From Selaginella moellendorffii (taxonomy: Eukaryota; Plantae; Lycopodiophyta), in the NCBI RefSeq assembly GCF_000143415.4, contig NW_003314265.1:262405-326404 (forward strand): a stretch of 64,000 nt of DNA, read 5' to 3'. The first letter of the stretch is position 1, and each line of letters starts with the position of its first letter. The position numbers were made by a program, and so were the translations under genes. The notes beneath the pieces were generated by a model. That model made no database searches and was not told the origin of the DNA. It worked only from the letters and a program-made list of their open reading frames with translations. Of the stretch, positions 4,653-16,911 are shown in pieces.

Positions 4653-5439
4653 GAGATCTCAGCCCGCGCCTGGAAGATCAAATGTACGCATCGATTTCTA
4701 GAGCTTCGATTGCCTCGACGATGATCGGCCCGTGATGTATTTCTGCATGGCCTGGAAGTTCATTTTGGAGTAGTTTCTCTCCTGAAAGTTATGATGGCTC
4801 ACAAAAAACTGAAGCCGAGCGAACCTTTTCGAGCGAGGTTGTAATCCCGTCGTTGATCATCGCCTTGTAGAGGAGCACCATTCTCCCGTCGTTCTTATGG
4901 AGAAACCACCCGGTTGACGAGCCCCCATCGCTCGGCGGTCGATCGCGGGTTCTGTTGGCACCCACTGGCCAGCTTTTGTGAGAGCCCGCAAGATGGAAAG
5001 ATTCTAAACCTGAAATGTATACGAAAAGAAAAACACAAGGAGAGGAACACAAAACCATGAGAGAAGACTTTGGTCTTGGTTTCATGTTTTTTGATGTTTG
5101 ACTTGAAAAAAGTCATGCAAAGAAACCAAGGCCAAAGTCTTTTCTTATGGTTTTGAAGAAACCACACAAACAAAGAGATGCACTAAGAATTATAAGGAAA
5201 TGATCAGAAGCAAGCTAAGAAAGATCTCACAAGCTAGCAAAAGACGAATGAAACATACCACCCCAGAGCAAAATGCCCTTTCAGTTGATCCCGTGATTAT
5301 CCCAACCCAGCGGCGTTGAGCGCCTTGGGCCGTTCGTGAATTAAGGCGTCACTCCCCTGCTGCTACTGGCGTTGATCGATCGACCGACCCATTTAGAATG
5401 CTACCTTCTTACGCTAAGCTTCTTTGCGGCTCCCTCTCC
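4653..5439 (-). pseudogene. Deletion-riddled near-full-length copy of the enoyl-CoA hydratase gene (introns and 5'UTR retained, exon 2 missing)
   Basis: Colinear with 6538-7930: gatcaaatgtacgca, ctagagcttcgattgcctcgacgatgatcggcccgtgatgtatttctgcatggcctggaag, gaatgaaacataccaccccagagca, ctttgcggctccctctc. About 790 bp versus about 1390 bp. Confidence 0.92.
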
Positions 5440-5469
5440 CACGTGAGTCGTTATTCGATTCACACGGCC

Positions 5470-5910
5470 TGAAAGATCAAATGTACGCACGATTCCTTCA
5501 AGTTCTAGAGCTTCGATTATGATCGGCTCGTGATGTATTTCTGCATGGCTTAGAATCCTCAAAGTTAAGAAAAATTTGGATTTGGCTTCAAACTTTAGAA
5601 AAGCCACGCGAACCTTTTCGAGCTCGAGCTCGAGTGAGGTTGATCCCGTTGTTGATCATCGCCTTGTAGAGGAGCACCATTCTATTGTCGTTCTTGGCAA
5701 TCACTTCCACCACAGCTCCATAAGCGCAGACGGAGAAACCACCCAGTTGACGAGCCCGAGTGCTCGGTGGTCTAGGCCTCCTGGCCAGCGTTTGTGCCAA
5801 AAGATAGAATGATTCCATATAGGCTGTGCAAGAAGTTTTCAAAGGCACTCACATGAAGAAACTGATGTCAAAAGACAAACCAGCTAACTGGAGAAACTGA
5901 TAATTGGTGC
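5470..5910 (-). pseudogene. Second degenerate enoyl-CoA hydratase copy, with an exon-2 fragment inverted (5822-5910)
   Basis: 5470-5815 is colinear with 6548-7025. 5822-5910 (gctgtgcaagaagttttcaaagg..tgatgtcaaaagacaa..gaaactgataattggtgc) matches the sense strand of exon 2, so it lies in the opposite orientation. Confidence 0.85.
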
Positions 5911-6067
5911 TAAAAAAAACAGTGAAGGTTGTATTTAAACCTTACTTTATAATCTTATAAAATTAAAAATAATTCAAATTTTTCTTCTTAATATAAGCTC
6001 AAATAGTAATATTTTAAAGTATTTATGAGTATGATTTTAAATATAAACTTCTTTTATGAGAAGGTTT

Positions 6068-6410
6068 TTGGTTTGCTTAAGCAAACCTATAGGGGGACTG
6101 GGATGGTAGTGGATATACCTAGAATATACTTGGATATTCTAGGATATTCTACCATCTAACGGTTGTTATTCATTTAGATTAATCTTGTATTTATAATTTA
6201 TAAACATGTTTATAATTTATAAACTTCCTTAAACCTTTTCTAGTATATTCTTTTTTATTCTACCATCTTGATATGCAATAAAATTAATCTTGTATATATA
6301 AATTACAAACATGCTTATAATTATAAACTTTATTTGATCAATTGGATTAATATGTAATAATAACACTAGTATTAAGCAAACCAAGCGTTGCTACATGCAA
6401 CGCGTAGCAA
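6068..6410. mobile_element. AT-rich non-autonomous element (MITE- or Helitron-like)
   Basis: 13-bp inverted repeats ttggtttgcttaa (6068-6080) / ttaagcaaaccaa (6372-6384); internal duplication 6178-6226 vs 6282-6330; ACTAGT at 6365-6370 next to hairpin gcgttgc-tacat-gcaacgc (6385-6403); homologous copies at 23706-23892 and 54108-54262. Confidence 0.6.
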
Positions 6411-6579
6411 TTTTTTTAACAGCTATAAACATAAATTATAATTATCAACTATAACTGCGGGCTTTGGGTTATCACTCATGGTCCTCAAAGAGACATATAG
6501 TGAGTGTTAACTCCATTGCGTTTCCTTCCCTTATAAAAGATCTCCGCAAGATCAAATGTACGCACAATTCTTTTGATTT

Positions 6580-7854
6580 CTAGAGCTTCGATTGCCTCGA
6601 CGATGATCGGCCCGTGATGTATTTCTGCATGGCCTGGAAGTGATCTGGCTTCATTTTGGAGTAGTAGTCATGAGCTCTCTCCTGAAAGTTAAGAACAATT
6701 GGATTTGGCTCGACAAAAGCTTTCGAACTTTAAAAGCTGAGCGAACCTTTTCAAGCTCAAGCGCATTTCCCAGAGCGAGGTTGACCCCGTCATTTATCAT
6801 CGCCTTGTAAAGGAGCACCATTTTCTCATCATTCCTGGCAATCGCTTCTGCCACAGCTCGTGCCGTCTCCATAAGCTCAGATGGAGAAACCACCCGGTTG
6901 ACAAGCCCCCAACGCTCGGCGGTTGAGGCCTCCAATGGCAAAGCCGTGAGTGACACCTCACGGGCTCGGTTGACACCAATTAGACGGGCCAGCTTTTGCG
7001 AGAGCCCCCAAGATGGAAAGATTCCAAACCTGAAATCAATACACGAATTATCAAAAAAGAAGAAGAAGAAGCAATTGAGTTAACACTCACTTGCTGTGTG
7101 TGTCGATGAATTTGGCATTGCTGCTCGCAAAGAGGATATCACATGCGAGTGATAGCTCAAAGCCTGCAGTTATAGCCAGCCCATTGATGGCGCCAATGAT
7201 CGGTTTCTTGCATCGCTCCATCTGTGCAACGGGATCAGCTGACTTGTCTTTGACATCACCTTTAAAAACTTCCTGTGCAGCTGTTAAATCCTGTATCAAC
7301 TAGCTTTCGTTAGAATTCTCTGTAAGCGTAGAAGAGCAAAGGACTAAAAAATCTCTAAAGCTATCCCTCCAAATATAAAAACAATGAAAAAAAGACGTTT
7401 GGTATTCGTTTCTATGCTTTCTTTCAGTTCATCAAGAGAAAAAACACAAAAGACCAAATGCGGTTTTTTCAAGAAACCACACGCAAACAAAAAAAGAAAA
7501 AAAAGAAAGAAACAAAGAGATCCTTTCGGATAGAAAATCTCAGACACCAAGAATTCTAAGGAAATTATCAAGAGTCAAGCTAAGAAAAATCTCTCAAGCT
7601 AGCAAACGATGAATGAAACATACCACCCCAGAGCAGAATGCCCTCCCGGACCCCGTGATTATAATCACTTTGACCTCTGGATCGCTATCCAGCTGCTTGA
7701 AGATCCCGGCCAGGCTCGTCAGCATTGGCTTGGTGAGGGCGTTGAGCGCCTTGGGCCGATTGAGCGTGATCGTGGCGATCCCGCTCCTTTTCTCCACGAG
7801 AATTAGGGCCTCACTGCCCTGCTTCTGCTGGCGTTGATCGATCGGCCGATCCAT
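6580..7854 (-). CDS. Peroxisomal enoyl-CoA hydratase/isomerase (ECHIA-like), 4 exons
   Basis: ITLNRPKALNAL, GRAFCSGVDL, KPIIGAINGLAITAGFELSLACD and AERWGLVNRVV. The last exon ends ...GRSSSRQSKL*, a PTS1 signal (SKL). Confidence 0.95.
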
Positions 7855-8082: not shown

Positions 8083-11000
8083 ATGCGAGGCGCATTGGAT
8101 CGGCGCGTTCTTCTCAAGGTACGCTGCTACTGCACTAGTCCCGGGCGAGGAAGAGGAAGAGCCGCCGCGGCTCCACCGTCCAAGCAATCGCCGCTACCGG
8201 CAGCCCCGGCACCAAAATCCGCGTCGTCGTCTCCCGGTGTAGGTCACGGCAGTGGAATCGCAGCTCCAGCTACAACTCCTGTGTCGAGCTCCGGGCGAGG
8301 CAGGGGTGAATCCCCGATCGCAGCTGCTAGAAATGCCACAGGGCAAGCACTACAAGCAAATGTGGCTACATCCAGTCCAGCTGCGGCGATTCCACAGGCC
8401 AAAGCTACGGCAGTGAAGGCAGCGAAGGCCGCGAAGGCCGCGATTCCAGCACCAGTCAGCAACATCACTGGTGTTGTGACGAGCGGCCAATCTCCACCTT
8501 CGCAGGTAAGAATTCCATTTGTAGTGTAAGAACTACCGTTATAACTTGTTTTCTGTGCGTTTTTCTCTTCTTTTTCTTGAGCAGGCACCTGCGGATCCTT
8601 CTTCGGAGGTATGCCCGTTAGTTTGCACGAGAAACTTGGCTCATTTCTTGTTTTTCAGCAGGAGACGCCCGCGTATCCCCCGTCCAAGGTAATTGCTTTC
8701 ACCTAAGAGCCTGAATTTTGATGTTGATAAGTTTTTTTGCGCAGAAACCTACAAGCCGTCTTGAGGCTTCGGAAGCTTTTGGTGCGTTGATCCAATCCTG
8801 CGTCAGCCGAGGACTCTACTACGAGATCGACTACGTGCATGCAGCAATGCAAGTTGCTCACATTCCTACGACCATGCAGACGTGCCAAACGCTTCTGAAC
8901 GCCTACATCCAGCTGGGAAATTCCCAGAAGATGGATAACATTTACGCGGAGATGCGGGAGATCAGGACGGGCGGGCAGCAGAAACCAGAGCCGAGCGTAC
9001 AGGAGAAAGCTCAGGCTTCAGAAACTCTTGCAGCGTTGATAAGTTCGTGGTACAGCCGGGGATTTTACCAGGAGGTAGGCATGGCTTACAGAGGGATGAA
9101 AGCCGGCCATCTGCCGGTGTCCATGCAGGCTTGTAGAGTTGTGATGGACGCCTACAATCAACTGGGAAACTACTCAGCCATGGATATGGTTTACAGTGAG
9201 ATGCGAGCACTGATGACAGCAGCAACAGAAACACCAATCGCTGCGCAGCAACCAGCAACAACAGTCTCAGCAGTCCCGGCGCAGCCAGTGACAAGACCAC
9301 CCGCAGTACCATCGCATGGTGTTGGTCACGGAACACCTCTTCAGACACCTGGGATGCAGCATCAAATTGGCCAGGCTCCTCAATACCAGCAGTCTCAACA
9401 AGCTCCAGCCACATTAAATCCACAGCAGCCTGCGGCACCGCCAACACAGCAATGGTCTCAAACGTCGGCTTACTATCCACCGAATCCATACGTCAATATG
9501 CAGCCGGTTCCTCAGGCTCCAGTCGGATATCATCCTCAAAGTCAGCCTTCGGTATATCATCCAGGATATCAACAAGCCTATCAGGGGTATCCGGGATACT
9601 ACCAGCAAGCTTATCCGGGATACCAAACGTATCCAGGATATCCACCGGGCTATCCTGGATATCAACCGGCTTATCCTCCGGGCTATCAGTATCCCCCTCC
9701 ACCTTATGCACCAGCAGCAGTCCCACCGCCGCCACCTCCACAAAATGTCGCTATTGCAAGACCACAGCAATATCCTGCTACACAAGTTGCCACTCCAGCG
9801 CCGCAAGTTCCGACATCAACTGGACAAGCTGCGCCACAAGCTGTCGGCCAAGCTCCCCGACCAAAACTCGAGCTTCAGCCAAAGGCGCTTGAGTTGCTGC
9901 AGCAGTCACCAGAGTTACTCAAAGCTGCAGGTGATAGAGCAACTCTTATGGAAGGTAAAGCTGCGGCGAGTGCAGTGCGGCCTCAAACGCAGGTTCAAGC
10001 GCAACCTCCCCAGCAGTTTTCGCAGGTACCGTATCAACAAGTACCAATGAGCGTCCACAGCCCAGCTCAGTTTACAGCAGGTGTTCCTCAAGTTAGACCG
10101 GCTGGACACGCTCAGTTCCAAGCGCCACCGCAACCAGTTCCGATATATCCTTCAGGACTCCCTTTGAGACCAGGAGTGGTGCAAAGGCCAATTGGCCAAC
10201 CACCTTCGACGCATGTTCCAGAAGCGCCATCGGCCGCCAAGAAACTGCCACCTGAAGTTCCAGCCGTGAAAATTGAGGCGTTGAAACCACCGCCACCACC
10301 ACCAAAGCCTGTAGAGACGAAGAAAGCAGCGGTTGTGGACACGGTGTCTCCAAAACCTGCACCAGCAAAGACCGATATCAAATCGCAAGTTGAGGCGAAG
10401 GTTTCAGTGGCGGCTAAGAGTAAAGATGTGGTAGCGTCAGTGCCAAAGCCTGAGAAGACTGAAGTTAAGCCGAAGACACCTGCAGCGGTGGCTGAAGAGT
10501 CTACTCCAAAGCTGAATCTCACGCCAAAGAAACCTTCAACTGTGACGGAGCCTCCTCCAAAGTTGGATCTTCAGCTGAAGAAACCTGCAGAAAAGAAGGA
10601 AGAACCTCCAAAGTTAGACCTGAAGCTGAGGAAACCTCCAACAGTGACGGAAGAGCAGGCTGCGCCTGAAACCAAAGACGAACCTGGACGTGCTAAACTG
10701 GAGCTTAAGTTGAAAAAGCCTTCGGCTGTTCCCGTAAGAATGAAGGAAGAAACCACACCTGGAGCTGTAAAAGTACAAGATGAACCAGCAGAAGCGGAAG
10801 GAAGTAGACCTGGTGTTTCAAAAGCTGCGCCGTTGAAGCTGGAAGTAAAATTGAAGAAAGAAAAAGCTGCAGAAGCTCCGACGCCCGAACCTCCAACCGT
10901 ATTACATGGACTTGGAAGAGGCAAAGTAGTGGAAGAAAAATCTTCGGACCTTCCCAAGCCACCTCCGTTGCGTCTTGATCTGAAGAAGCCGGGCTCACCG

Positions 11001-12275
11001 AAGGCAGTGAAAGAAACCGTTAAAGCTGCTGAGACAGAGACTCTTTCCGAGAGCGAGGCATCTGATACCGAAGTGGATCGACTGCCTTCTATCCGGAAAT
11101 TCATTTCTCCTGGTCGAGGCAAAGGCGTCCCACTCATGGATCCAGTTGCAAGTCTTATTGGTCTACACACGCCAACAGATGAGCTACTTCAGGAGGAAGA
11201 AGCTTTGGAGAGTCAGCAAGGTGAACAGGATGAAAGTTTGCCTGCTCTGCCTTTCGAATCGAGACGAGGCAAAGGCAGGGGGAAAGTCATCGATCCCACT
11301 ACTGTTGCTGCTGAAGTGAAGCGATCGAAACTTAAGAGGGAAGAAGCAGCGGCGAGAGCCATGGCTATTCTGGAAGGTGGTTTGGGGAAGTCTCAGATGT
11401 CCGCTTATCTGGAGAGGAGGAAGAAGAGATTCAGCGATCAGTTTTCACTGGGGGACGTTACCAGCAAACGAACAACCGAAATAAGACCGGGTGGCGGAGT
11501 CAAGAAAAGTAGTAGAGGCAAACAAGTGGTGCCTCAAGGTGTGATAGATTTGGATGGAGCCATCGAGTACGTAGCGCCGCAAGAGTATATGGCGAAAGGG
11601 GACGCTCTTACGAAGGTGGAGGAAGCGATCAAGGGAACTTTGCACAGGCATTTCATGGTACGTTACTATTGTGTTTTTCTGTTCTTTCCCGGTTCTTGAC
11701 GTTTTTGGTTCCCGCGAATTGCAGCTGGATGTTGACCCGGAGGCTGCAATGGAGGAGTTTGGAACAAATCCAGATATTGATGACAAACCTTTGCCAACGT
11801 TGGAGGAATCACTGGACAGAGCCAAACGAAAGCTCGTTTCGCAGGATGGCATTGACGAAAAAGCATGGGAGGTAAGAGCAAAATCGTCGTTCTTCTCTCA
11901 GATTCTTTGGCTCTAATGAGCTACAAAAAAACTTTGCAGGAAGCCGTGCAAGACGTGAAAGAGCGTGCCCCGCAACTCCAGTCTCTGATCGAAACTTACA
12001 CGGGCCCCCAGCAGAAATCCGGGAAGAAGAAGAACGAGGAGCTCCATAAGATCGTGAAAGCGCTCCCACCGTTTGCCAGTCCCGAGCTAGCGGCGTTTGC
12101 CAAGAGAGCGATGGTCACTCTTCAAGTAAGCTAGATCTTCTTCTCTACTTGGATAGATCGCTCACGAAATTTTTCTTGGCAGAACAATCCCGATTGGAGC
12201 CATGGAAACAAAACCAAGCTCTTGAAGAGGCTCGTGGCCGACGCTAGACAACTCCACGAGAGTGGGGCTTCTTAA
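8083..12275 (+). CDS. At1g53645-like plant mitoribosome-associated protein (mS31/mS46-type), expanded to ~1270 aa
   Basis: N-terminus MRGALDRR..GRGRGR; C-terminal domain FGTNPDIDDKP..YTGPQQKSGKKKNEEL..LQNNPDWS matches the recalled At1g53645 FGSNPDIDEKP..YSGP..KSNPGW. Exons 8083-8505, 8585-8608, 8659-8688, 8745-11657, 11725-11871, 11940-12125, 12183-12275. Confidence 0.8.
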
Positions 12276-12324: not shown

Positions 12325-15300
12325 ATGGTGATGGCGCTCCAGATTTCCGCGTCGTCGCCGGCCTTCCCGATCGATTCTCCAGCTCCAGCTCCACGATTCG
12401 TGTATCCGCGAGCAATGCCGTCGATCCGATGGCCGCAGCACAGCGATTACGCCTCGAGAAGGACAGGAAGAGGCACCGCCGAGGAGAGCGAGGACTCGCC
12501 ATCGCATTCGCATTCGCATTTCCAGCAAGAGAATGCCGCCGGGGAGAGGGAGCCGTTGTACGTGGTTCTGGATCCCCAGAAGCCGAAGAAGATGTGGCGG
12601 CAGTACCGCGGTGAGTACCTCCAGCCGCCGCTCATGGCTGTGCTAGAGCCCGTCAAGCCGCGCAAGATGTCCAAGCTCGCGCTCAAGCGCGCCAAGGACT
12701 GGCGGCAGCGCGTCCAGCGGCTGTCGGACGCGATTTGCCGGCTGGACGAGCACGAATTCGTGCGCGAGACGGTGGATGGCTGGAAGGAGCAGCTCGCCCC
12801 CACGGATTTGTGCTACGTCGTGAAGCGAGTGGCAAACACGAGCTGGCAGCGCGCGCTGGAGCTCTACGAGTGCCTCAACGTTGCTCGCTGGTACGCTCCC
12901 AATCCAAGGATGCTGGCGGTGATGCTATCGGTGCTGGGGAGAGCGAATCAGCCCGGCCTAGCGCAAGAGCTCTTCGACCGAGCGGAGTCGAGCATTGGCA
13001 ATTGCGTCCAAGTTTACAACTCGCTCATGAGCGTCTACGCGAGGCATGGAGATTGGAACAGCGTCCAGCAGCTTCTCTGCCGGATGCAAGATAGAGGATG
13101 CCGGCCGGATCTCGTCACCTTTAACATCGTGATCAAGGCGAGAACTCGGGGTGGCATGCAAGAGGGTCTCGCCTCCTCGCTCCTCCAGGACGTCTACGCT
13201 GCTGGTCTCAGGCCGGATACCATCACGTACAACACTTTGATCAGCGCTTGCAGCCTCAACAACAGGCTGAGCGACGCCATTTTGATCTTCGAGGAGATGC
13301 AGCGGCAGGGGTGTGATCCGGATATCTGGACGTACAACGCGATGATCTCGGTCTATGGTCGAGCTGGGAGAGTCGAGGCTGCGAGCTCCATCTTTAGGAT
13401 CATGCAAGAGCAGGGCTTTACTCCGGATGCCGTGACTTACAACTCGGTGCTCCATGCTTTCGCCAGGGACGGGAGGATTGAGGAGGTGGAGAGGATCCGA
13501 GGGATGATGAGAGACGCCCGCTGCTCCTCGGACGAGATAACGTACAACACGATGATACACATGTATGGGAAGGCGGGGATGCACAGGAAGGCCGAGGAGC
13601 TTTACGTCCAGATGAAGGAGGAAGGACGCTGCCCGGATTCGGTGACTTTCACGGTTTTGATCGACACGCTCGGCAAGGCTGGGTTTGTGAACGAGGCAGC
13701 GGCTATGTTCGAAGACATGCTCAAGTCGCAAGTCAGGCCAACTCTGCAAGCTTTCAGCGCCATGATTTGTGCGTATGCAAAGGCGGATATGTTTACTGAT
13801 GCGGAACACACTTACAGCTGCATGCTTCGTGCTGGAGTTCGTCCCGACCTCTTGGCTTACTCGGTGATGCTGGACGTCTTCTTCAAGGCTGGAATGCCAG
13901 AGAAGTGCATAATTCTATACAAGGCTATGGTTGGCTCGGGCTTGAAGCCGGAGCTCAGCGTCTACGCCATCATGGTTCGGGTCTTCTATCAGAAAAGTTC
14001 TGTAGCGGAGATCGAGAACCTTAGCAAGGAGATGGTGCAGTCCAGTGCTAGCTTGGCCGCGCTTTCTTCCACGCTTGCTAAAGGTGGATTCTATGCGGAA
14101 GCCGCGGTTGTGTTGAAGATCTCCTTTGCGCAAGGGGTGGCAGTGAAGGTGGAAACACTCAACGACGTTCTCGGTGCCTTTGAGGCATCCGGGAAGCTCA
14201 GTGACGCGCGAGATTTGGTTCACGCGGTGTCGAGCATCGAGCCTAGTGTTGCTGCTCACCTGTACAAGAGACTGGCGGTGATGCTGGCAAAAGCTGGAAG
14301 GTTCAGTGAAGCGGAGGAGGAGATGAGAACATCTCAGACTTACGGCCAGGTACAGGTTTCCGACTTTCTCAAGGTGTTGGTCGCTTCCTATGATCGAGCT
14401 GGCATGCAAGACGAAGCTCTTGCTCGGTTTCTGGATATGACAACAGAGGGATTGGAAATGGACGCTGAAGTTCTTCAAACTGCTGTGATGTGCTACTGTC
14501 GCAAGGGGTTTGCTTTCGTTGCGCACGAGCTTCTGATCGATTGCCTCCATGCCTTTGACGTTAAGGACTCAGCCATGCACGTTGCGATTATCGCATCTTA
14601 TGGAAAGTTGAAGCTGTGGCAGAATGCCGAGATCGTTTTCAGAGATTTGCAGCAGCATGGTTTTGCTGGAAACACATCCGCCTACAGCGCGTTGCTCTCA
14701 GCTTATGCCGAGACTGGAAACTTTGAGCGAGCTACGAGAGCACTGGACAATATGGTGGCCGCCGGTCTACAGCCCAACGCTACCTGTGCAAACTACGTGC
14801 TCGAAGCCTTTGGGAGAGCTGGGAAAGCAAAAGAGATAAGTGAGTTCTTTCAGCGCTTGCCTGAGATGGGGATAAGTCCTAACTCAAGAACGTTTGTGGT
14901 GATTTTTCATGCTTTTAGCAGGAATGGAAATCTGGAAGAAGCTAGGAGCATGTACCGGCAGATGAAAGAGGCCGGATTTTCTCCCAGCATCCAGGTGTTC
15001 AAGGCTTTGCTTGCTTTATACTCCAGAGAAACGGTTGAGATCGATGCTGAAGAGCTTGTCAAGGACATCAAGAAGGCAGGATTGGAGCTCGACATAGATA
15101 TCTATAACCATATGATCAGCTTATACAGCAAGCTCGGAAGCTACAGAAACGCGGCCTTGGTCTTCAAAGGGATGCAAGAAATAGGCTGCTCGCCGGATGC
15201 CACCACTTTCAACACACTTATCATGCTCTACAGCCGCAACCAGATGGTGCAAGAGGCTCAAGCTCTTCTCAGGGAAATGATTAAAACAGGCAATGCTCCA

Positions 15301-16911
15301 AACATCTCGACGTACACGACACTCATCTCGGCTTACGGTCGTCTCCAGGCATATGAGGATGCTGAGCTTGTTTTCAAGAGCATTGCGGAAACCGGGTGCA
15401 AGCCTGATGCTACAGCGTACAATGTGATGATCAACGTGTACCGGAAAGCTGGGGAGCACAGGAAGATAGAGGAGATCATAGAGCAGATGAAAGTCGATGG
15501 CTTTGAACCGAGCCTGACGACGATTCACATGCTCATGGATTCTTACGGGAAAGGTGGTGCTACTGGAAAGGCCGAAGAGGTTCTCGAAACGCTACCAGAG
15601 ATTGGAATGAGCCCGGACGCCATCCACTATACGAGCATCATCAACTCCCACTTGAACAACAAGGATTATTTGTCTGCGGTGATATGGCTGAGAAAGATGA
15701 CCGACGCTTGTGTTCGGCCCACTCATGTTACAATAACTTGCTTCGTCGGGGCTGCGTCGGTCTGCGAAAGGTCAAGTCATGCGTTGATGCTTCTGAAAGC
15801 TTTGTCCGAAGCTGGTTTCTCGCTCCCTTTGAGGTAAGTTTTTTTTCCTTTGCGATTCGATTCTTACTAAGTGTTCGTTGTTTTCTTTTCGTTTTCAGGC
15901 TTATGACCGAATGCACTCCCAAGGTGGTGCAGGACATGCAAGACATATTCGATCAGTTGCAAGAGTCTGGCCCCGAAGCATGCCAAGGGGTTGTAAACGT
16001 GCTTATGGACTTGCTCTGGGCATTCCGGCAGTGCGCAACAGCAGCTTTGGTGTTTGCAGTGGCGATTGAGAGCAACATTTACACCCAAGTTTTAGCCAGG
16101 TACCTGACAACAACCTTTGGAGCAAATAGCTGACACGTTTGCTCGTGTTTTTGACTCCCAGGGTGAAAGACAGGAACTGGGGAGCGGACTTTCGTAGACT
16201 GTCGCCAGGGGCCTCACTGGTCGCTTTGATACTCTGGCTGGATCAAATGCAGGTACAACGTACATTCGTTTACGCTCAATATCATACTTACGAACTAGCC
16301 CTCAGGACGCTTCACTGCAAGGATCGCCAGTTCCACCAAAGTCCATCCAGATAGACATAGGAAGCAGCAAGCTAAACAACCAGGCCTCGGTGAGAAACAC
16401 AATCAAAGCTCACCTTTGGCAGATGGGGTCACCGTTTCTTCCATCGAAAACGAGGGCCGGAGTCCTGGTCGCAAAGAGCCACGCTCTGTGCATGTGGCTC
16501 AAGGAATCGCCTTACTGCCTCGACCTGGAGCTCAAGAACACGAAGACTCTGCCCGACACAAACGCCATCCAGGTTTACAACGGTGCTTTCGTGTGGGCCG
16601 GGCTGGCACCGGCCATCCAAGAGATCGACGAGACAATGGGGGACATACTCCCCAAGAAGTTCGCCAGGCTCGTCCATCTCACCCCGGAAGGACGAACAGC
16701 GGCCATGGAAGCCGACTTGAGGGGGAGAGCTGAAAAGCTGGCCAAGCAGCTCAGGGTGAAGCTCCCGAAAGCTAGCAGTCAAGTGGAGAAGAAGAAGGAA
16801 GAGAAGAGGCTGAGGAAAGCTGGGAAGATGAGGCAGTCACCAAAGCTTGCAAGACCAAGAGAGAAACAAAGGTTTGATGATAGCAAAAGCCTCAATAATA
16901 TAAGAGTTTGA
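12325..16911 (+). CDS. EMB1270: Plastid P-class PPR protein with C-terminal SMR-like domain (At3g18110 ortholog)
   Basis: More than 20 tandem 35-aa PPR motifs; PSIRWP, DWRQRV, WGADFRRLSPGASLVALILWLDQMQDAS and LWQMGSPFLP..AKSHALCMWLKESP. Three 3' introns. Confidence 0.88.

Follow-up and report, generated by a model that had tools for sequence, protein, structure and literature searches.

Four pentatricopeptide repeat motifs in two tandem units on the arm of the mitoribosomal protein mS31/mS46 of Selaginella moellendorffii, and homologous units in moss and fern orthologues

In the stretch of Selaginella moellendorffii DNA analysed here (the window; 64,000 nucleotides of contig NW_003314265.1, positions 262,405 to 326,404 of the forward strand), the plus-strand gene at 8083-12275 is, by homology and gene tree, the orthologue of the mitoribosomal small-subunit protein At1g53645, known as mS31/mS46. 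The long arm of the encoded protein carries a module that is composed of four genuine P-type pentatricopeptide repeat (PPR) motifs, organized in two tandem units of two motifs each. Single homologous units are present at the equivalent place in moss and fern orthologues, and their distribution suggests that one two-motif unit is ancestral, that it was lost repeatedly and that it was doubled within an exon in the lycophyte line. Considering all the evidence, an ancestral PPR unit on the mS31/mS46 arm, doubled in the lycophyte line and serving a putative docking role, is probably the correct explanation. As regards its families, the protein is a variant on two that are already known, mS31/mS46 and PPR.

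The module corresponds to the opening of exon 4 (8745-9230, plus strand), whose translation gives 162 residues. There, 8769-9227 encodes two tandem units, each about 70 residues long and made of two 35-residue PPR motifs. A BLASTP comparison of one unit with the other gives 31 identities in 71 residues (44%) with no gaps (E 7e-24), and their nucleotide sequences are 60% identical; this repeat cannot be a chance match. Residues 9, 44, 92, and 127 of the module open the four motifs, and inside each pair the spacing is exactly 35 residues. For motif 1A (8769-8873; residues 9-43), the register was set by the phmmer alignment with PAP2/pTAC2, and motif 1B (8874-8978; residues 44-78) holds the best Pfam PPR stretch (residues 46-72). 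After a linker of 13 residues (8979-9017), partly coil in the predicted model, motifs 2A (9018-9122; residues 92-126) and 2B (9123-9227; residues 127-161), also on the plus strand, align without gaps to 1A and 1B, respectively. On the isolated 162-residue module, the Pfam family PF01535 (PPR) reaches 32.9 bits in two stretches, the cut-off being 25. Moreover, a phmmer search of the module against the PDB finds as its best match the plastid PPR protein PAP2/pTAC2 (E 1.3e-7 to 1.3e-5), in an alignment that spans both units and reflects generic PPR similarity. In this same search, which covered all PDB chains including those of the cauliflower mitoribosome, no chain of a ribosomal PPR protein (rPPR) appeared at E values up to 1. 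A tetratricopeptide repeat identity was also considered and rejected, since the corresponding models do much worse (E 0.18) and the structural comparisons place PPR proteins at the top.

The predicted fold agrees with this assignment. The AlphaFold model of the module, built on an alignment of eight rows, has a pLDDT of 90.7 and a pTM of 0.84 and contains eight helices forming four hairpins: residues 2-21 and 25-37 in motif 1A, 44-57 and 60-74 in 1B, 85-104 and 108-120 in 2A, and 127-140 and 143-161 in 2B. Designer PPRs, PPR10, and PAP2 are the top matches in Foldseek (E about 2e-3). With VIA-align, residues 7-75 of the model superpose on two consecutive motifs of solved PPR proteins with Z values of 8.5-8.9 and a root-mean-square deviation of 1.4-2.2 Å over 66-71 residues; the chains involved are 4wsl, 9gyt_1v, 8r6s_G, 6lvr, and 4m57, PRORP1 and PPR10 being among them. 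For the second unit, residues 91-161 match a designer PPR with a Z value of 6.9 and a deviation of 2.4 Å. Z values of this size are common among helical repeats, and the fact that PPR proteins rank first weighs more than the Z itself. Thus modelled, unit 1 is predicted to be a canonical PPR pair; unit 2 matches a solved PPR structure more weakly, and the packing of the two pairs against each other is uncertain.

The identity of the host protein is given by its C-terminal domain, encoded at 11619-12272 (plus strand) by the end of exon 4 and exons 5-7. For the full-length analyses, the stored public protein model from NCBI was used (P0001, 'titin-like isoform X2', 1274 residues), and the exons of the window were searched individually. 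With the last 235 residues as the query, residues 1121-1267 of P0001 align with residues 346-493 of the 496-residue chain X of PDB entry 9evs (147 residues, E 1.3e-27). Also, exon 6 alone retrieves this chain from the PDB ('mS31/mS46, BnaC06g06470D') with an E value of 2.3e-6. The last 186 residues of exon 4 gave no match when searched with phmmer against the PDB, because only about 13 residues at the end of the exon, from the point where the 9evs_X alignment begins, belong to the conserved domain. No Pfam family was found on exon 1, exon 5, exon 6, or the C-terminal domain. According to the supplement of the cauliflower mitoribosome study, chain X is mS31/mS46, that is, Q9C8L9 or At1g53645, a component of the head (PMC12672651), and it is this C-terminal domain that forms the ribosome-bound part in that structure (PMC12672651). 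The same Arabidopsis protein, AT1G53645, appears as mS84 in an earlier review (PMC6953067), and its Brassica homologues bear the UniRef name 'Hydroxyproline-rich glycoprotein family protein'.

A tree of the C-terminal domain (53 sequences) matches the species tree, with zygnematophytes, bryophytes, Selaginella, ferns, and seed plants; Selaginella is found on a long branch (1.11), and its exact placement is unsure. Beyond the C-terminal domain of about 150 residues, the Arabidopsis and cauliflower protein (in cauliflower, chain X of PDB entries 9evs, 9evt, and 9gyt) shares with that of Selaginella the MRG start, the GRGRG motifs, and a long low-complexity arm. However, the angiosperm orthologues have 340-581 residues and no PPR match, whereas the Selaginella protein has 1270 residues and four PPR motifs on its arm. 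This identification corrects several database labels, the Selaginella protein being called 'titin-like' and those of moss and ferns 'uncharacterized' or hypothetical.

The coding region consists of seven phase-0 exons (8083-8505, 8585-8608, 8662-8688, 8745-11657, 11725-11871, 11940-12125, and 12183-12275, plus strand), whose GT/AG borders were read from the window DNA and whose ends were refined by hand. Exon 1 (8083-8505) encodes an N-terminus typical of the family, with an MRG start, many arginines, and two GRGRG motifs, features also seen in the homologues of mosses, liverworts, ferns, angiosperms, and algae. A mitochondrial presequence followed by low-complexity arm is probably encoded here. 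Exon 4, with 2913 nucleotides and 971 uninterrupted codons, opens with the PPR module, continues with the low-complexity arm (9228-11618; 19% Pro, 12% Ala, and 9% Gln over exon-4 residues 163-800), and reaches the beginning of the conserved domain. Module and the start of the C-terminal domain being joined in one exon, they belong to one transcript. P0001 agrees with this gene model in exon order and content and is 99% identical across the PPR module, and the two are probably different haplotypes of S. moellendorffii. The continuity of the Selaginella transcript rests on the exon structure, on this public model, and on orthologous transcript contigs.

A large P-class PPR gene of at least 1170 residues (12325-15837, plus strand) starts about 50 nucleotides past the stop codon of the mS31/mS46 gene, a proximity that could suggest that a small separate PPR gene has been wrongly merged with mS31/mS46 in the annotation. 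Nonetheless, one open exon holds both the module and the beginning of the conserved domain, the N-terminus typical of the family is encoded ahead of the module, an intronless contig from the fern clade has the identical order, and the similarity of the module to the neighbouring PPR gene is a generic 19-23%, all of which makes such an artefact extremely improbable. Capture of the module from that adjacent gene was rejected as well, given this low similarity and the presence of the unit in moss and ferns.

Up to this point, the analysis bears out much of what a sequence-only reading of this DNA had proposed. The two homologous units are where that reading placed them (its strings run 8778-9209, inside the interval 8770-9212), and their 35-residue spacing and PPR character, with about four motifs, are recovered by Pfam on the isolated module, by the phmmer register on PDB entries, by the predicted fold, and by VIA-align. 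The AlphaFold hairpins are likewise as expected, and the region does not come from another transcript, as the shared exon indicates. Its identification of the host as the mitoribosome-associated At1g53645 protein agrees with the 9evs_X match, the identity in the cauliflower supplement, and the gene tree, and the absence of PPR motifs from the angiosperm protein is also confirmed.

The evolutionary part of that reading is not sustained. It held that an insertion gave Selaginella, and no other lineage, about four PPR motifs, perhaps for its unusual mitochondrial RNAs, a proposal consistent with the lack of PPR in angiosperm orthologues and Marchantia and with a word-index search in which the module matched only the Selaginella protein. 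However, this last blank reflects the word index and a length window, and not absence. Similarly, the word-index search with the C-terminal part returned 921 candidates, none with E<=0.001, which is a limit of sensitivity, since an exhaustive phmmer search with the C-terminal 185 residues against 1.84 billion representatives gave 79 homologues, most of them of 400-560 residues. When these homologues were searched with the module and then with a profile of the unit, four showed one clear unit each: P0005 (858 residues) from Physcomitrium patens (cluster member XP_024390674), P0048 (1225 residues) from Adiantum capillus-veneris (KAI5066484), and P0022 (1204 residues) and P0040 (1141 residues), fern transcripts that cluster with Adiantum in the tree of the C-terminal domain. 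As pieces of 103 residues, three of the four units pass a Pfam PPR cut-off (38.3, 36.5, and 26.2 bits), P0040 not being included. In the moss and the ferns, the unit sits between the family N-terminus and the C-terminal domain, as in Selaginella, although its location along the arm differs (residues 165-316 in Selaginella, 288-357 in the moss, and about 580-705 in the ferns). Moreover, the P0022 contig (4076 nucleotides) is intronless and is read as a transcript, so that unit and C-terminal domain are co-transcribed there. The orthologues of Physcomitrium (855-858 residues) and Adiantum (1225 residues) thus share with Selaginella the whole order of N-terminus, arm, PPR unit, and C-terminal domain, the difference being that they have one two-motif unit and Selaginella two.

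PPR-like motifs occupy the equivalent place in orthologues from zygnematophyte algae. Among these, the unit profile matches two Closterium homologues (E 1e-4 among 99 sequences), and the Mesotaenium homologue P0027 presents three consecutive PPR-like motifs at residues 254-360, with a Pfam PPR score of 22.4 bits, just below the cut-off. A single-sequence model of the latter shows three hairpins whose best matches are nearly all PPR proteins (TMq 0.55-0.66), only one of the five models being confident. The tree also contains a sequence labelled as from the amoeba Leptophrys vorax (P0020, 296 residues) that groups with Closterium and is most likely a sequence of algal prey in the amoeba transcriptome.

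With the unit in the same protein of moss and ferns, and with PPR-like motifs in algae, a gain restricted to Selaginella is very unlikely, and the idea of an insertion linked to the divergent mitochondrial rRNA of this plant loses its basis, the module being older than the lineage. That orthologues generally carry the module is true in part: one unit is present in moss and ferns, which goes against a lineage-specific gain, and the doubling is specific to the Selaginella line, which is what survives of it. The moss, fern, and algal units therefore reverse the earlier evolutionary reading, leaving an ancestral module, repeated loss, and one doubling.

The losses are extensive. PPR families match just four of the 47 near-full-length homologues, and none was found in the 43 others scanned, which include those of Marchantia (535 residues), Nymphaea (448 residues), and Brassica. 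Also, all 37 rows of the seed-plant clade are without PPR, every named row being an angiosperm. Within mosses both forms exist, because a second moss sequence (P0010, 557 residues) lacks a 330-residue block of P0005 (residues 141-470) that contains the unit, the two sharing 73% identity over the C-terminal 390 residues; P0010 could be a paralogue or come from another moss species.

Regarding the doubling, the two Selaginella copies are sisters in the tree of the units (support 90/91), the ferns form their own group, and Closterium falls outside. The Selaginella copies are about 44-45% identical to each other, versus 23-33% to the moss and fern units, and the comparison between them gives a dN of 0.46 and a dS of 1.27, the latter near saturation, for a ratio of about 0.37. 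These values suggest that the duplication is old, that it took place later than the split from ferns, and that both copies have been constrained by purifying selection. The step from two to four motifs is the only part of the architecture specific to the Selaginella line.

The canonical recognition code of PPR proteins has N, T, or S at position 5 and D, N, or S at position 35 of the motif. In the four Selaginella motifs, position 5 is occupied by G, Q, A, and R, and unit 1 has T and Q at position 35 (with the register read by eye), so that the canonical residues are not found. At position 5, the moss unit has V and S and the fern units D and D. In addition, the window differs from P0001 at two codons of the module, Tyr/Asn at 8904-8906 (motif 1B) and Ser/Asn at 9054-9056 (motif 2A), and with the change from Tyr to Asn the full-length protein drops from 22 to 16 bits against Pfam PPR. 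Such code residues, the Tyr-to-Asn change that the other haplotype has in the core of motif 1B, and the repeated losses in angiosperms, in Marchantia, and in the moss copy P0010 would all be expected if the units were remnants without function on an arm that is disordered and evolves fast, heading to loss as in seed plants. Nonetheless, the unit has been kept in the early-diverged lineages of land plants while the flanking arm diverged beyond alignment, the fold prediction is confident, and the dN/dS ratio between the Selaginella copies is low, with dS near saturation; a relic is thus improbable.

In what concerns function, the architecture, the homology, and the phylogenetic distribution come from the present analysis, the place on the ribosome follows the cauliflower structure, and the docking is our proposal. 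In cauliflower, mS31/mS46 forms the head protuberance together with uS3m and mS35, and its arm, with the N-terminal 300 residues not resolved, is disordered, faces the solvent, and is directed to the mRNA entrance (PMC12672651). The authors of that structure proposed that the protuberances of head and body, near the mRNA entry channel, may serve in mRNA recruitment (PMC12672651). By extension, in Selaginella the C-terminal domain would anchor the protein on the head of the small subunit, the long low-complexity arm would extend into the solvent by the mRNA entrance, and the small PPR platform on the arm would be where incoming mRNA, or helical-repeat factors bound to it, dock, with no base-specific reading. 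This docking role is our best guess for the plant unit, although a tentative one that is somewhat more likely to fail than to hold.

A partial precedent for such a role exists in humans, where the N terminus of mS31 becomes ordered on binding of LRPPRC and, together with the PPR protein mS39, docks LRPPRC-SLIRP to form a corridor for mRNA hand-off (PMC11637978). As in the plant arm, which is directed to the mRNA entrance, the human system combines an N-terminal region of mS31 that is otherwise disordered with PPR-type repeats at the head of the small subunit. However, the human repeats belong to other proteins and the mS31 region consists of two helix-turn-helix motifs, whereas in Selaginella the PPR motifs are in the mS31/mS46 chain itself. 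Moreover, the origin of metazoan mS31 has been placed at the root of Metazoa (PMC11637978), and the homology of the human and plant arms is therefore doubtful; the parallel with the mS31-mS39-LRPPRC corridor would be one of function, by analogy.

The module could also be real and ancestral and have a structural function, being a contact, on the head of the small subunit, with an expansion of rRNA or with an adjacent ribosomal protein, and have no part in recruiting mRNA or factors. PPR proteins stabilise extra rRNA domains in plant mitoribosomes (10.1101/2024.10.28.620559), and chain 1v of the Brassica oleracea mitoribosome is among the top structural matches of unit 1 (Z 8.9). The non-canonical code residues would suit contacts with the RNA backbone or with proteins. 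With short P-class PPR proteins and the rPPRs of the plant mitoribosome (mS76-mS81 and others), the module shares the 35-residue register and the close superposition of unit 1 (1.4-2.2 Å); however, rPPRs are separate proteins, and the search of PDB chains tied the Selaginella module, with its non-canonical code positions, to none of them specifically by sequence. A structural contact is also hard to reconcile with the cauliflower arm, which is disordered and solvent-facing instead of bound, with a position of the unit along the arm that varies widely between lineages, and with angiosperm ribosomes that function without it. We regard this alternative as unlikely, yet as one to be kept in mind.

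Several observations weigh against an ancestral PPR platform with a docking role. First, in its context the module falls below the Pfam cut-off, the PF01535 scores being 22.3 bits for the complete exon and 15.7 bits for the allelic P0001, which explains the missing PPR label of the public entry. Second, an array of two plus two motifs is very short for a PPR protein, and code residues that are non-canonical and variable between lineages make base-specific reading of RNA unlikely. Third, the Foldseek global TM scores to PPR arrays are 0.35-0.38, with a deviation of 11 Å; in the model, which is based on eight sequences, the two units pack differently and a single canonical solenoid is not seen. 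Moreover, the algal evidence is weak, being Pfam scores of 22.4 and 12 bits and a single-sequence model for Mesotaenium, and the sampling does not include other lycophytes, hornworts, or identified gymnosperms. Finally, its repeated loss shows that a mitoribosome can work without the module.

Other features were observed in the gene and around it. The low-complexity arm contains a repeat with a period of 51 nucleotides at about 10497-10720 (plus strand), with four copies of a PKLDLKLKKP-like motif and looser ones nearby, and this motif is absent from the eight homologues checked. The acceptor of exon 3 (8656-8661) is a tandem cag|cag, in which use of the first AG instead of the second adds one Gln; isoforms X1 and X2 of the public model may differ by this choice of acceptor. 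In the PPR gene downstream, the Pfam family PPR_2 scores 434 bits in 17 stretches. Upstream, on the minus strand (4789-7854), pieces of open reading frame that look like enoyl-CoA hydratase recur three times, with the peptide MVLLYKAMIN at 4789-5085, 5588-5848, and 6651-6956 on that strand, a recurrence that suggests exons or gene copies duplicated in tandem.

How plant mitoribosomes find and load their mRNAs is still being worked out. In the searchable literature, no paper was found that links mS31 with these non-seed plants, which is no proof that the architecture is undescribed. An arm that outside seed plants bears a folded and conserved PPR unit is a concrete and testable element, and Physcomitrium offers the single-unit form in an organism that is easily engineered. 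The module is also a further example of PPR motifs inside a ribosomal protein that have been lost several times. Extending the analogy further, the common ancestor of zygnematophytes and land plants would have had an mS31/mS46 with its own PPR platform on a flexible arm at the mRNA entrance, a counterpart of metazoan mS39/LRPPRC that seed plants, which would rely on separate factors instead, dropped and Selaginella doubled, a scenario that we consider unlikely though not remote. If it were true, the mitoribosomes of mosses, ferns, and lycophytes would recruit mRNA partly via the mS31/mS46 arm.

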